Shown here piece by piece: positions 19,502 through 23,858 of a stretch of 64,000 nt of DNA. Position 1 is the first letter of the stretch. Every line of letters begins with the position of its first letter. Both the position numbers and the translations under genes were made by a program. The notes below the pieces were generated by a model. It did not search any database and was not told the origin of the DNA. It saw only the letters and a list, made by a program, of their open reading frames with translations. The stretch is from sequence record KT919973.1; one strand, given 5' to 3'.

Positions 19502-20609
19502 GAAATTACGGCATTATAGACCGAGAAGGCAGATATCTACTTGTGCTAGACATTGACAATGAGATAAAAGTCATGGCAATCTTTTCTGAAATCGAAGATG
19601 CAAATCGTGTGCTGTACAAATATGATTTCGACAAACAAGGCTTTCGTGTAATTGAACTACAACCATTGGAAAAGAAACTATGAACGTATCAAATGTAATG
19701 TCACAACACGCTGAAATTCAAGATGCACTTATTGCCATGCTTGACGATGAGTTCAACGGCAAAGGTCATATCGAATATGCAGATTACTTCGATGACGAAC
19801 AACTATGGGAAGTGCAATACTTCGATGGTGAAACAGTACAAGAAGTCATTGTAACTACAGTCGCGCTCGAAAAATGGATGCATAATAACAAATGATACAT
19901 GACATTATCATCGAACATCGTCGCATCATGAACATAGTCACTGAGTTATGCCAACTCAAATCATATGAATTCATTGATGACATCGAGTACGATGAAGACA
20001 AACAAATATTCTATGTCACCATCGCTGAAGAAACTCAAAACGGCACTGAATACATAGAATGTAAAATCACTCTGCAACTAGTAGAAAACTACTATAAGGC
20101 TTGACAATGAAATTACCAGAATACTTACAACACATCAAAGTAAACGAAAACGTAATTACAGTAGACTCAGCACGCGATAAAGCATTAGTCATCGATTACC
20201 TACAATCAATCAAAGCACGATTCCATACTGTACAAAAGACAGTTAGCCGCTGCGAAATTCACGTCAAGAGAGCTTAATCATGAAAGAACTACTTAAAACA
20301 ATGAAAGAAACTGAAGAAGCCATCGCAGCGAAGTTTGGTCTCGACCATCTATGGCACGGACTAGTAGACTGCACCGATAGCGTATTCGCTGCTGATGAAC
20401 AAGACCTACTAAAAGCACACGAATTCCAATACGGCGATTGTGAAAAGGCAATCACAGAAGGCAACTGTTATGGCGTTGAAGTGTACGGCACAAGCGTGTG
20501 GCTATCAGATGATAAACAATACCTACTGATTGTAGCTGATGATGGAAGTGGCAATCGAGACTTCTATATCTTCGATATGTCTAAACACTCAGATTGCGAA
20601 ATGTACTAA
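19486..20609 (+). other. Small hypothetical CDSs: 19486-19683, 19680-19895, 19892-20104, 20107-20277, 20280-20609
   Basis: Tight packing; strongly C/A-rich + strand. Confidence 0.65.
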
Positions 20610-20611
20610 AG

Positions 20612-20682
20612 AAAAGGGTTGACAACTGTCAGCCCTTTCGCGTATCATACACATATCAAATCAAGAAAGGAAAAACATTATG
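20612..20682 (+). promoter_or_regulatory. Terminator/promoter cassette
   Basis: AAAGGGTTGAC-AACT-GTCAGCCCTTT; TTGACA-18bp-TATCAT; AAAGGAAAAACATTATG. Confidence 0.85.
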
Positions 20683-21516
20683 ATTGGACTATCTATTATC
20701 ATCGCAGTATTCAGCGTCGTGCTAATGATAGACTCACACGAGCAAATCATGTCTAAAGAATACAGAAACTTTGTCTTGATATTCAATGCCATTTGCTGTA
20801 TAGTCAATCTAGCTAACATGATTGTGATTCACAAATACGGAGTAACACTATGAGCTTGACAATACTACTAATGACACTTCTATGCTGTGCAATACTCACT
20901 GGCATGAGTATCTTCAGCTTCATTAACAAACCTAGCTTCGTGAAACTAGTAATCACTGCTGTTCTAGGCTTTGTCTCATATGTTCTACTACACGTAACGG
21001 CAGGCGCAATATGAATCAAACTATCAAAGCAATATGCATAGACAATACTTCAACTCGTATCGATAAACCCGAACCACCAAGCGGCATTACTCTCGGCAAA
21101 GAATATGTCGTTCACATGTATAACGTAAACGAACATACAAACAAACCACCTATGATTCGTATTACTAATGACAACAACCAACGAGCAAGCTATGTCGCTG
21201 CACGATTTAATCTAACAGTAGGATAAACTCATGTTCGCACTATCAATCTTAATTCTGATTCTCACTACATATCTGTTTGTAACCGATAAATCAAAACGAA
21301 CAGTTCCATTCGTGGCTCTGCTAATAACAACTGCGTTTAACTGTATCATTCAGTATTACCTAATTGATATTCTATCATTGAGCTTTAGTCTGAAGTAACA
21401 TGCAAACATTAATCGATTTACTAAACGATATACCCATCGGCTACATTATGCTTGTTCTATGTGCTCTAGCAGCTATAGCCGGATGGTGCTTGAGCGATAT
21501 GTCAAACAATGACTAA
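20680..21516 (+). other. Operon of small membrane peptides (20680-20853, 20850-21014, 21231-21398, 21400-21516) plus soluble 21011-21226
   Basis: Manual translation: 57, 54, 55 and 38 aa, each with 1-2 hydrophobic segments; coupled junctions. Confidence 0.65.
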
Positions 21517-21547
21517 AAACGCTTAGAATCGCTCTCACAGCGTCTCA

Positions 21548-21594
21548 GAGCATGGTACATATAGTATTGTTTTTAATATATCGCACCATGCCTC
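21548..21594. other. AT-rich element in an inverted repeat (candidate DNA-unwinding element)
   Basis: GAG-CATGGT...ACCATG-C-CTC enclosing a stretch with only 3 G/C in 25 bp (21557-21581). Confidence 0.5.
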
Positions 21595-21607
21595 GTTTAA
21601 ATGCACA

Positions 21608-21716
21608 TGTGTATAAATCTGTGGATAATATGTGTATGAGATTGTGCATAAGTGTCTGAAATCTGTGTATAAAAACATGATTTAGCTGTGCATAAGTCTG
21701 TGGATAATGTGGATAA
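21608..21716. repeat. Array of eight co-oriented DnaA-box-like 9-mers in noncoding DNA (candidate origin)
   Basis: TGTGTATAA 21608, TGTGGATAA 21620, TGTGTATGA 21631, TGTGCATAA 21643, TGTGTATAA 21664, TGTGCATAA 21687, TGTGGATAA 21699, TGTGGATAA 21708; 7 match TTWTNCACA exactly on the minus strand. Confidence 0.9.
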
Positions 21717-21886
21717 CTTTTTAGTGAAAAATTGGTGAAAGTCTCATCGGCTCCTGTGTGGTACGCGGCAGTCTAAAACCTTACACCATTTGTAAAAATC
21801 TAATCCGCTTCGCATCTTTTTGCTTGACACTCAATGCCGTCCTGTGAGAGGATGAGAAGACAACTGAACACCTTGGGAGGGGTGAT

Positions 21887-22033
21887 ATGATAACATTAGC
21901 TTTGTTTTATATGAGTCGCGACATGCAATACAGTGAGCGACCAAGTGACTTGTACCTTGGTACATGTATTTTAGACTTTGCATTAATCGCCACGATGTTC
22001 TGTGGTGTAATGATGTTCACTGGTAATTGGTAA
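21887..22033 (+). CDS. 48-aa membrane peptide
   Basis: Strong GGGAGGGG RBS; hydrophobic C-terminal half; TAATG coupling to the next gene. Confidence 0.6.
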   Translation: MITLALFYMSRDMQYSERPSDLYLGTCILDFALIATMFCGVMMFTGNW

Positions 22034-22356
22034 TGTTGTTTAAGAATTACAAAGTGAATCGCCATGTACGTGCTCGTGCTCTAGAGTTATTGAATTGTGG
22101 TGAGTTGCATCGCGTGTACACCTGTTTAGAGCTACAGCGTGGTGTGAATTCAGAAATGGTTAGCTTGATTAAGCTTAAACTAAAGCATTTGCAGCGTATG
22201 TATGTTCGCCAGAGTGATATGCCGAATGAGTTAGAAGATTGTTATTCTTTTATCTGTGCGCATCATCCGCCCTGTGAGCGTCGTAAGTTGCGTGCATATG
22301 AGCGCAAGAGCTGGTTGAAATACATTATAGAGAACATTAATAAGGTTAAGATATGA
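22033..22356 (+). CDS. Hypothetical protein, RKxWLK paralog family (copy 1)
   Basis: A.ELL...YTC and ERKSWLKYI motifs. Confidence 0.7.
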   Translation: MLFKNYKVNRHVRARALELLNCGELHRVYTCLELQRGVNSEMVSLIKLKLKHLQRMYVRQSDMPNELEDCYSFICAHHPPCERRKLRAYERKSWLKYIIENINKVKI

Positions 22357-22427
22357 ACGTAGTCTGCCGTTACTGGCAGATGATTATAAGCGTTGCAGTG
22401 ATGTAGAATTTTTCTAAGGGGTATTAG

Positions 22428-23039
22428 ATGAAACGAGTAGAAAGAAACAAAAAGGTAGTAGAGAAGCAAGCGGTCATGCCTAGTGGTAGTTTATCGCGAG
22501 TTGAGACGTACTACAACACATTGTCTGGTTATTTGAATTTCATTGATTCGGGTGATGGTATTCGTGGTGTAGAGCAGCCGACATATATGCTTGTATGTGA
22601 TGACGGTTCGTTTTATTCAGTAGAAGAAGAGCGCGTGAATGGTAATGTGCAGCGAGAGACTAAGATTAATGGTCAAAAAGTCTCTGTACATGCACGCCTG
22701 AAGCTATCAGCGAAAGATTGGGATTGGTATCCTTGTAAGTGGAAGAGCGGGCGTCTTGTTTACACGTATAAAGAAACTGATTTTGTCGATGAAGAGCATG
22801 AGCTAGTGGTTGGTGAGATACTAGACATTTATGCCGCAAGCGATAGTGTATTGGCATATGCACATGACGCGACAGTTGTCGTATCTCGTCCGACACAAAT
22901 TGCCGTTGAGACGTATGGTAAACTAGTTGTGTTTACAGTTGGTGATTCTAGTGTTGATGAACTAGTATCTGATTGTGGTGATTATCGTATTGATGGTCGT
23001 TATCTTGCTAGTCAGTACGATGAAGAGCTTCATTCGTAA
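22428..23039 (+). CDS. Hypothetical protein
   Basis: 203-aa ORF; G/T-rich codon usage. Confidence 0.7.
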   Translation: MKRVERNKKVVEKQAVMPSGSLSRVETYYNTLSGYLNFIDSGDGIRGVEQPTYMLVCDDGSFYSVEEERVNGNVQRETKINGQKVSVHARLKLSAKDWDWYPCKWKSGRLVYTYKETDFVDEEHELVVGEILDIYAASDSVLAYAHDATVVVSRPTQIAVETYGKLVVFTVGDSSVDELVSDCGDYRIDGRYLASQYDEELHS

Positions 23040-23048
23040 AAGTTAAAG

Positions 23049-23111
23049 AAAAGGGTTGCGCTATGCAGCCCTTTTTTGTATTATAATGACTTTGATTTGG
23101 AGAATATTATG
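23049..23111 (+). promoter_or_regulatory. Terminator/promoter cassette (left flank of endonuclease)
   Basis: AAAAGGGTTGC-GCTAT-GCAGCCCTTTT; TTGCGC-17bp-TATTAT; GAGAATATTATG. Confidence 0.85.
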
Positions 23112-23858
23112 GCTAGAATTAAATGGACACTTGAACGTCTTAAAGAAGATGCGTTGAAATACAAGACACGTACTGAATGGTGTAAAAACTCACAAGGTGC
23201 TTACTGTGCTGCGTCAAAACGTGGGTTACTTGATGAGTGCTGTTCTCATATGCATTCATCAATTAAAAACGCATTTTCTCGGTGTATATATCGAATATAT
23301 GCAGATAATGAGATTTACATTGGGTTGACTTACGATACTAAGCAACGCTTTAGTTCTCATCGAAAGCAAACACCTCAGATTATTGACCTAATCGAACGTC
23401 ATGGCATTGAAAACGTCAAGTTCGAGCAATTGACTGATTATATGAATCAAGAACTGGCGCAGTTGTCCGAGAAAGAACACATCAAACAGTACAGAAATGA
23501 CGGATGGGTTATTTTAAATCGTTCTAAGGCTGGTGCATTAGGGTGTTCAACATTAAAATGGACACTAGAACGTCTCAAAGAAGATGCATTGAAGTACAAG
23601 ACACGTACTGAATGGAAGAAAATGTCGAGCGGTGCTTATATGTCTGCTTATAGACGAGGATTGGTTGATGAGTGCTGTGCTCATATGTCATTGATGAAAG
23701 GTTATTGGACACTAGAACGTCTTAAAGAAGATGCATTGAAATACAAAACTCGCAACGAATGGCAGAAGATGTCGAGCGGTGCTTATTCTACTGCTAAGAA
23801 AAAAGGCTTACTAGATGAGTGTTGTGAACATATGCCGAAAAGAGCCAAACGAAAATAA
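23109..23858 (+). mobile_element. GIY-YIG endonuclease with three ~44-aa WTLERLKEDALKYKTR...DECCxHM repeats
   Basis: CIYRIY...IYIGLT...RFSSH catalytic module between repeats 1 and 2. Confidence 0.8.

Follow-up and report, generated by a model that had tools for sequence, protein, structure and literature searches.

DnaA-Box-Like Sequences in the T4-Like Vibriophage phi-ST2: A Conserved Array with a Candidate Role as an Accessory Replication Element

Arrays of DnaA boxes in virulent phages are a known, unexplained kind of element, represented by phage T5, and the array considered here, found at positions 21608–21716 of a 64-kb window (the whole stretch of DNA analysed) from the 250,485-bp genome of Vibrio phage phi-ST2 (KT919973.1), is of this kind and differs from that of T5 in arrangement and phage family. 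Phi-ST2 is a T4-like phage of the genus Schizotequatrovirus in the KVP40 group, isolated on V. alginolyticus; over 1.1 kb around the array, the window and this record agree at 100% identity and in their coordinates. Outside virulent phages, plasmid and prophage origins such as those of P1 (oriR), F, pSC101 and RK2 draw in host DnaA by means of consensus boxes, which helps to melt an AT-rich region alongside, and the chromosomal datA locus needs an IHF site and a particular arrangement of boxes. In every T5-like phage, the inverted repeats of the untranslated injection-stop region contain some eight DnaA boxes, grouped in pairs with 3 bp between the partners, and membrane-bound DnaA has been proposed to hold the incoming T5 DNA there (Davison 2020, bioRxiv 10.1101/866236). 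These boxes were first noted by Heusterspreute et al. in 1987, as cited in that work (bioRxiv 10.1101/866236). In T4, the origins share no common motif, and oriE, which requires an early promoter, contains 12-nt repeats at even spacing (PMC3016281).

The phi-ST2 array consists of eight co-oriented DnaA-box-like 9-mers on the minus strand, packed into 109 bp. A motif scan finds seven exact matches to TTWTNCACA on that strand, starting at 21608, 21620, 21643, 21664, 21687, 21699 and 21708. Each of these satisfies the narrower pattern TTATNCACA as well, and TTATCCACA is the sequence of three. The eighth site, at 21631–21639 (TCATACACA), is oriented like the others, carries one mismatch and is similar to the E. 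coli R5M site, TCATTCACA. Start-to-start distances along the array are 12, 11, 12, 21, 23, 12 and 9 bp; gaps of 3 bp separate boxes 1 and 2, 3 and 4, and 6 and 7, and the remaining gaps measure 0, 2, 12 and 14 bp. The number and orientation of the 9-mers, the seven exact matches, the three top-consensus boxes and the 12/11/12-bp spacing of the first four had been put forward in an original prediction for this DNA, and each of these details is reproduced here. Outside the array, TTWTNCACA occurs six times in the window, on both strands, against a shuffle expectation of 11.25 per window, and the Poisson probability of seven or more matches in a single 109-bp, one-strand window is 8.6e-19, or about 1.1e-13 when corrected for every placement. 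The whole genome of 250,485 bp holds 25 strict boxes, seven of them in the array, and no other pair lies within 200 bp. The array is real, non-random, as had been anticipated, and the sole such cluster of the phi-ST2 genome. Chance and simple tandem duplication are both ruled out as its source, the spacers being unlike one another and conservation being confined to the box positions.

The same pattern extends to related phages. When the region was aligned from 13 phages, 11 of them, from three clades and two genera, were found to bear the array. Seven strict boxes stand in the same place in each of phi-ST2, Va3, XZ1, phi-Grn1, VH7D and ValKK3; VS2, VS1 and QD01 have five strict boxes plus near-boxes there, and nt-1 and CZ01, which belong to a different genus (Mylasvirus), have four strict boxes plus near-boxes. 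Across these 11 phages, variable columns make up 5 of the 64 specified box positions, 4 of the 8 free fifth positions and 21 of the 37 spacer positions (Fisher test, 1e-7 for core versus spacer and 0.007 for core versus free position); the columns come from related sequences and are not independent events, and the contrast between them is large. This is the footprint expected where selection acts on TTATNCACA as such, and it suggests that purifying selection holds the boxes in most phages of the KVP40 and nt-1 groups.

The array lies inside a 370-bp gap between a stop codon at 21516 and an ATG at 21887. The gap is judged noncoding, in line with the earlier claim, because variation within it tracks box and spacer rather than codons and because one clade carries a 1-nt deletion. 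On the same grounds a minus-strand open reading frame (ORF) at 21535–21678 (47 aa) and a 101-aa coding sequence annotated in QD01 were rejected as genes. The gap is conserved better than the flanking genes, and the similarity peak in distant relatives spans 21514–22035. The AT-rich flank that had been noted beside the boxes is likewise present: the segment at 21556–21580 has the lowest stability of all 25-mers in the window and the 12th lowest genome-wide, most of the less stable 25-mers of the genome containing or resembling the late-promoter motif TATAAATA. This segment ends 27 bp to the left of box 1 and is bracketed by conserved, genome-unique blocks, with block B directly to its left (Table 1). 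Among the relatives, its sequence drifts and its AT-richness is retained.

On the evidence of the box sequences, the array is probably a platform for binding of the host initiator DnaA. Host DnaA is favoured because the motif agrees with the DnaA consensus even in its one degenerate position; because the same motif and phasing recur in unrelated phages, which argues for a host ligand rather than a phage protein; and because the box-GTC-box pair is a common bacterial module, often found near dnaA. The exact consensus, together with a fifth position that evolves like spacer, strongly supports the earlier view that host DnaA recognises the 9-mers. The DnaA proteins of Vibrio and E. coli have the same box sequence in common, and the oriC of Vibrio harveyi works in E. 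coli. A six-frame search of phi-ST2 detected no DnaA domain IV-like protein (best E = 0.42), which is a weak negative, as a single sequence, E. coli DnaA domain IV, served as the query; the neighbouring ORFs contain no Pfam DNA-binding or Rep domain. PhoB was considered as an alternative reading of the 11-bp repeats and rejected, since by eye the CTGTCAT half-site of the pho box needs a deletion to fit the invariant TGTGNATAA.

Comparable arrays are found well beyond the vibriophages. A scan of 2.9 million viral contigs in IMG/VR, with three co-oriented boxes as the criterion, recovered phased (11–12 bp), co-oriented DnaA-box arrays of up to 11 boxes in at least 119 contigs, and the same kind of scan with two composition-matched shuffled control motifs gave 16 and 69 loci. 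After simple tandem repeats were dropped, at least 75 DnaA loci stood against 1 and 5 for the controls, so that the DnaA arrays are at least 15-fold commoner. Among the matches listed, boxes were spaced by 11 bp in 139 cases and by 12 bp in 110, the fifth position was G (giving TTATCCACA) in 71–78% of boxes, and C flanked the boxes on the two sides in 63% and 67%. A box flanked by C in this manner matches CTGTGGATAAC, the form at R1 and R4, the two strongest boxes of E. coli oriC. The neighbours of these arrays, again among the matches listed, were terminase and SU10-type portal genes at 25 loci, genes of a second terminase family at 9 and YqaJ recombinase genes at 13, and the only T4-like match was a single three-box locus. 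A BLAST search of GenBank phages with the array returned T5-like phages and gokushoviruses among its matches; small Microviridae genomes of gokushovirus type from animal faeces carry runs of DnaA-box-like repeats, some of them near the replication initiator gene. In bacteria, the pair TGTGNATAA-GTC-TGTGGATAA, formed in phi-ST2 by boxes 6 and 7, occurs in at least 120 species of many phyla, where about one occurrence would be expected by chance for its 20 fixed bases, and dnaA (recognised by a domain IV match) lies within the 8-kb locus at 35 of 120 pair loci among the matches listed. In the corresponding bacterial 21-mer, TTATCCACA-GAC-TTATNCACA, the 3-bp GAC spacer itself seems conserved.

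Set beside the best-described systems, the locus shares features with each of them and coincides with none. Like T5, phi-ST2 is a virulent phage with its own replication machinery and carries about eight consensus or near-consensus boxes in a conserved untranslated region, with 3 bp in three of its seven gaps. A T5-like genome contains TGTGGATAA-GTC-TGTGGATAA and TGTGATTAA-GTC-TGTGGATAACTT, in which pair, spacer and right flank are as in boxes 6–8. In T5, however, the boxes form four pairs set into inverted repeats (IRC/IRD) of the terminal repeat, with spacers of 52 bp, whereas the circularly permuted, T4-type genome of phi-ST2 has them in one co-oriented run next to an AT-rich segment of very low stability. 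The left half of E. coli oriC, with its tandem-box basal unwinding system, is similar in having co-oriented boxes at about 11–12 bp and a 3-bp-spaced tandem pair. The likeness extends to an AT-rich, easily melted neighbour, which in phi-ST2 lies 5' of the plus-strand (TGTGNATAA) reading of the boxes, the side that the unwinding element of oriC occupies with respect to box R1. With datA and other chromosomal clusters, the array has in common a density of consensus boxes outside an origin context and the capacity for many DnaA molecules; unlike datA, it has no IHF consensus, is borne by a phage and is present once per genome. Plasmid and prophage origins also place consensus boxes beside an AT-rich region, but theirs are one to five boxes accompanied by their own Rep and iterons, and no Rep gene or second repeat family is seen at the phi-ST2 locus. 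T4 oriE, finally, belongs to the same phage family and likewise combines evenly spaced short direct repeats with a nearby early-mode promoter; the T4 repeats nevertheless lie within gene 5 (the gene 5/repEA region) with a 24-nt coding periodicity, are not DnaA boxes and are not at a syntenic location. The possibility that they are DnaA boxes was ruled out, box matches numbering 8 against 10 expected. These repeats, at 79.4–79.6 kb of T4 and thus close to the position annotated as oriE, recur with a 24/48-nt period, and their origin may be no more than a peptide motif that is repeated in the C-terminal region of gp5.

We tentatively rank first, as a candidate role, that of an accessory DnaA-assisted replication origin, or of an origin enhancer or unwinding aid. 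It is placed first because the AT-rich neighbour has the matching polarity, because the genome contains no second array and because the noncoding setting is conserved. With eight 9-mers facing one way, most of them separated by a single helical turn, the array would seed a DnaA oligomer on the phage DNA, and this oligomer would help to melt the AT-rich 25-mer beyond box 1. The opened DNA would offer single-stranded entry to the T4-type helicase loader and helicase of the phage, and early transcription through the region possibly assists the opening. DnaA binding, the opening of DNA by that binding and a replication start at the array are steps that we infer. The origin-like anatomy also includes a nearby predicted early-type promoter, and T4 oriE depends on such a promoter (PMC3016281).

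Several results weigh against a role in replication initiation, and they are gathered here. There is no GC-skew switch at the array, cumulative skew climbing steadily over the window; the skew flip that the original prediction had invoked in support of an origin amounts to a local dip of about 50 units at 20–21.5 kb, and genome-wide the skew follows gene orientation. T4 replication needs no DnaA, and we know of no contact between DnaA and a T4-type replisome. Unlike a bacterial oriC, in which box strengths are graded, the region has nearly all strong boxes, and it lacks DnaA-trios, a GATC cluster and an IHF site as well as the skew switch. Within 21450–21900, GATC is absent (0 versus 0.9 expected) and the IHF consensus WATCARNNNNTTR finds no match. 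Under the basal unwinding rule, the 16 bp next to the proximal box should include three or more DnaA-trio motifs (PMC8287927), whereas a manual scan of the 40 nt past box 1, in the TTATNCACA orientation, gave no three consecutive NTN/NAN triplets, and the AT-rich segment stands 27 bp from its box instead of at most 16 bp. The nearby predicted promoter points away from the AT-rich segment. In 74 metagenomic array clusters, the less stable flank was the left one 38 times and the right one 36 times; this absence of preference rules out a general polarity rule for phage arrays, and the flanks of the metagenomic arrays are only mildly AT-rich in comparison with random placements. The T5 boxes are far from the mapped T5 origins (bioRxiv 10.1101/866236), and the T4 origins reviewed in PMC3016281 start from R-loops, DnaA never being mentioned in that review.

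To these points is added the condition of KVP40 and phi-pp2, in which both flanks are retained and no box is left at the site: identity to phi-ST2 is 0.80 in the left flank and 0.73 in the right, and falls to 0.51 in the middle segment, which has the same length. Nor does an array occur elsewhere in KVP40, whose whole genome holds 10 scattered strict boxes with no pair within 200 bp, and one-mismatch boxes numbering at most 3 in any 150 bp. Conservation in KVP40-group genomes, as raised in the original prediction, is thus borne out by 11 array-bearing phages of two genera and fails in these two phages. The array is regarded as ancestral and as lost in the KVP40 species lineage, because it is present in both genera and because the right flank of KVP40 is nearest to that of the VS2 clade (0.87). 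Since not one box is left in KVP40, which is the type phage of the group, the array is dispensable and not an essential origin, its function being helpful rather than necessary; such dispensability fits a phage type with several redundant origins and recombination-driven replication. The segment replacing the array (KVP40 98.8–98.95 kb, with its counterpart in phi-pp2) is 91% identical between the two phages, versus 78% for the left flank, and in KVP40 shows no repeated motif evident by eye. It may carry a different function instead of being the result of plain decay.

Among the alternatives to an accessory origin, the one that survives best, although unlikely, is a DnaA sink, that is, a datA-like decoy in which the boxes of multiplying phage genomes soak up host DnaA. 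With comparably low probability, its effect would be that initiation of the host chromosome is stopped, or that DnaA-regulated host transcription, for example of nucleotide supply genes, is altered. Nearly all boxes are of consensus class, unlike the weak sites typical of ATP-DnaA arrays at origins, and one lineage has lost the element and does without it, as is often the case with accessory traits for host manipulation. Similar arrays occur, moreover, in varied contexts of unrelated phages (terminase genes, recombinase modules), which suggests a role independent of local genes. However, one array per genome means no titration at the single-copy stage, at which host take-over is decided, and simple titration has no need of strict co-orientation, helical phasing or conserved positions. 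The IHF site that datA requires for hydrolysis of DnaA-ATP is also wanting in 21450–21900, and literature searches gave no precedent for a phage DnaA decoy.

Somewhat less probable again is a function in transcription, in which a DnaA oligomer would block read-through from upstream or modulate the promoter at 21824–21853, thereby coupling early gene expression to the DnaA status of the host. DnaA is a transcription factor and can block elongating RNA polymerase at its boxes, as in the cases of E. coli asnC and dnaA. This roadblock activity speaks for such a function, as does the position of the array between an upstream string of early genes without an intrinsic terminator and a conserved predicted promoter, whose -35 is of consensus form and whose -10 is extended. 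Nevertheless, 108 bp separate the -35 element from the end of the nearest box on its upstream side, a distance beyond the reach of ordinary activation or repression; known DnaA-regulated promoters use far fewer than eight phased boxes, and KVP40 retains the promoter and the downstream ORF without the boxes.

We consider it improbable that the array tethers the genome in the way proposed for T5, with membrane-associated DnaA holding the locus and so positioning or pausing the incoming or replicating DNA. The pair and spacer TGTGNATAA-GTC-TGTGGATAACTT, shared between a T5-like genome and boxes 6–8, point in this direction, but the T5 idea is itself a proposal, the T5 boxes lie in inverted repeats within a terminal repeat whereas those of phi-ST2 all face one way, and in circularly permuted genomes of T4 type (PMC3016281) the array is at no fixed distance from the entering end. 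Least probable of all is that the repeats are phage iterons bound by a phage-encoded protein and merely resembling DnaA boxes, as might be imagined from the many small neighbouring ORFs of no known function and from the exchange of the whole segment in the KVP40 lineage, where its 91% identity to that of phi-pp2 is what a changed protein-site pair might leave; this is opposed by a motif equal to the DnaA consensus down to its free position and flanking preferences, by the recurrence of motif and phasing in unrelated phages and bacterial dnaA regions, by the failure to detect a DnaA domain IV-like protein in phi-ST2 and by the lack of any repeated motif visible in the KVP40 segment.

Table 1. 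Coordinates of the boxes, conserved blocks and other elements in and around the phi-ST2 array (positions in the window).
Feature	Position	Strand	Sequence and remarks
Conserved block A	21520..21529	+	CGCTTAGAAT; almost without change across 13 phages; marks where the conserved noncoding element has its left edge
Conserved block B	21546..21558	+	CAGAGCATGGTAC; kept in 13/13 phages, including KVP40; single copy in the 250-kb genome
AT-rich segment	21556..21580	.	TACATATAGTATTGTTTTTAATATA; least stable 25-mer; candidate DNA unwinding element
Conserved block C	21580..21592	+	ATCGCACCATGCC; kept in most relatives; genome-unique; interval between AT-rich segment and box 1
Weak inverted box-like 9-mer	21599..21607	+	AAATGCACA; 2 mismatches; abuts box 1; significance uncertain
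DnaA box 1	21608..21616	-	TTATACACA; fifth position T/C/G across relatives
DnaA box 2	21620..21628	-	TTATCCACA; perfect consensus; unchanged in 11/11 array-bearing phages
DnaA box 3	21631..21639	-	TCATACACA; one mismatch; box with the least conservation
DnaA box 4	21643..21651	-	TTATGCACA; unchanged in 11/11 phages
DnaA box 5	21664..21672	-	TTATACACA; variation at the fifth position only
DnaA box 6	21687..21695	-	TTATGCACA; with box 7 forms the pair TGTGNATAA-GTC-TGTGGATAA
DnaA box 7	21699..21707	-	TTATCCACA; perfect
DnaA box 8	21708..21716	-	TTATCCACA; perfect; abuts box 7; CGTGGATAA in the other two clades
Conserved block D	21743..21754	+	CTCATCGGCTCC; right of the array; genome-unique; TCATCGG invariant in 13/13 phages
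Putative early-type sigma-70 promoter	21824..21853	+	TTGACA, 15 nt, TGa, GAGGAT (GAGAAT in most relatives)
Small ORF	21887..22033	+	48 aa; hydrophobic C-terminus; phrog_16778; right end of the conserved block

Within the conserved element, one-mismatch copies of block A occur elsewhere in the genome at chance level, and blocks B and C form an imperfect inverted repeat in which no compensatory changes are seen among the relatives. Structured RNA was considered and rejected: Rfam at a permissive threshold returned nothing relevant over 20000–23500, RNAalifold on 10 relatives gave -7.7 kcal/mol with a covariation term of -0.5, and the inverted repeat GCATGGT/ACCATGC has mismatches in relatives without compensation. 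Neither a middle-type (MotA) promoter at block A nor a promoter feeding the AT-rich segment could be sustained, as no convincing -10 or -35 was found for either. The promoter at 21824–21853 is predicted from sequence and conservation together, a simple scan having missed it because the -10 hexamer of phi-ST2 matches at 3/6 positions; it is directed away from the array, toward the ORF starting at 21887, which it would probably drive.

The locus belongs to a cluster of early genes, with the rII and NMN-adenylyltransferase genes lying upstream, and the genes around the array are small, early-type and on the plus strand, with no Pfam or PHROG function except for one GIY-YIG ORF. That ORF (23076–23858), 1.4 kb downstream of the array, has a GIY-YIG domain (Pfam E = 4e-5), is a homing endonuclease in PHROG and is hypothetical in GenBank. 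The small ORF at 21887–22033, for which GenBank gives a later ATG (21911) as the start, is nearly identical at the nucleotide level in phi-ST2 and KVP40, including an identical run of about 47 bases, and this identity far exceeds the roughly 78% of matched DNA at the locus. In nt-1 the equivalent ORF is kept, but an inserted 531-bp gene splits it from its promoter. Just upstream of the element are two hydrophobic ORFs, at 21231–21398 (55 aa) and 21400–21516 (38 aa), that are annotated in ValKK3 and XZ1 and unannotated in the phi-ST2 record. Upstream gene content varies among relatives as far as 21517, phi-Grn1, VS2 and phi-pp2 carrying a gene of about 180 aa there, and because the difference reaches right to this position the left edge of the element is taken to be a recombination junction.

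The GenBank records of six close relatives (MT612988, MT612989, ON190025, ON190024, OQ164647 and OM782678) have their linearisation points on the right side of the array, no more than about 100 bp from it; by mapping of matches, R10Z and R11Z begin at 21812, and PVA23, PVA8 and PC-Liy1 finish at about 21782. The paper on PVA23, an assembly made with SOAPdenovo, states no reason for the linearisation point, and the shared point could be a copied reference or a recurrent coverage break. Phi-ST2 also encodes a 7-deazaguanine (preQ1) DNA modification pathway, at 72.5–73.4 kb and 238.6–246.3 kb of the genome, and its DNA contains 668 dPreQ1 per million nucleotides (PMC10516641). This level is low; a modified G within a box would alter the major groove.

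As far as literature searches reach, DnaA boxes have not been connected with phages of the KVP40 group in any paper, nor has a DnaA decoy of phage origin been described, and the claim that such an array is undescribed in T4-like phages holds to that extent. Its novelty is lowered, since a closely comparable eight-box array has already been described in the virulent phage T5. The origins of T4-related phages other than T4 are, to our knowledge, unmapped, and because of this, and because T4 origins have no shared motif and T4 is not known to need DnaA, a conserved DnaA platform with an unwinding-prone neighbour makes a concrete, testable origin candidate. It concerns a large group of aquaculture-relevant vibriophages; the boxless KVP40 lineage is a natural loss variant that serves as a built-in control, and the array-bearing phages nt-1, QD01 and CZ01 infect the fast-growing, non-pathogenic Vibrio natriegens, which makes the question tractable. 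It is doubtful, and somewhat more so than the accessory role alone, that a T4-type lytic phage has recruited the host initiator to a functional origin, or origin enhancer, that depends on DnaA (if so, a first for Straboviridae), with phased arrays being widespread, unrecognised phage cis elements that exploit or neutralise host DnaA. The wider result may outweigh the single locus, as the phased motif recurs in T5-like phages, gokushovirus records and at least 119 metagenomic viral contigs; judged by these sequences, this recurrence suggests that the use of host DnaA may be a common phage strategy.

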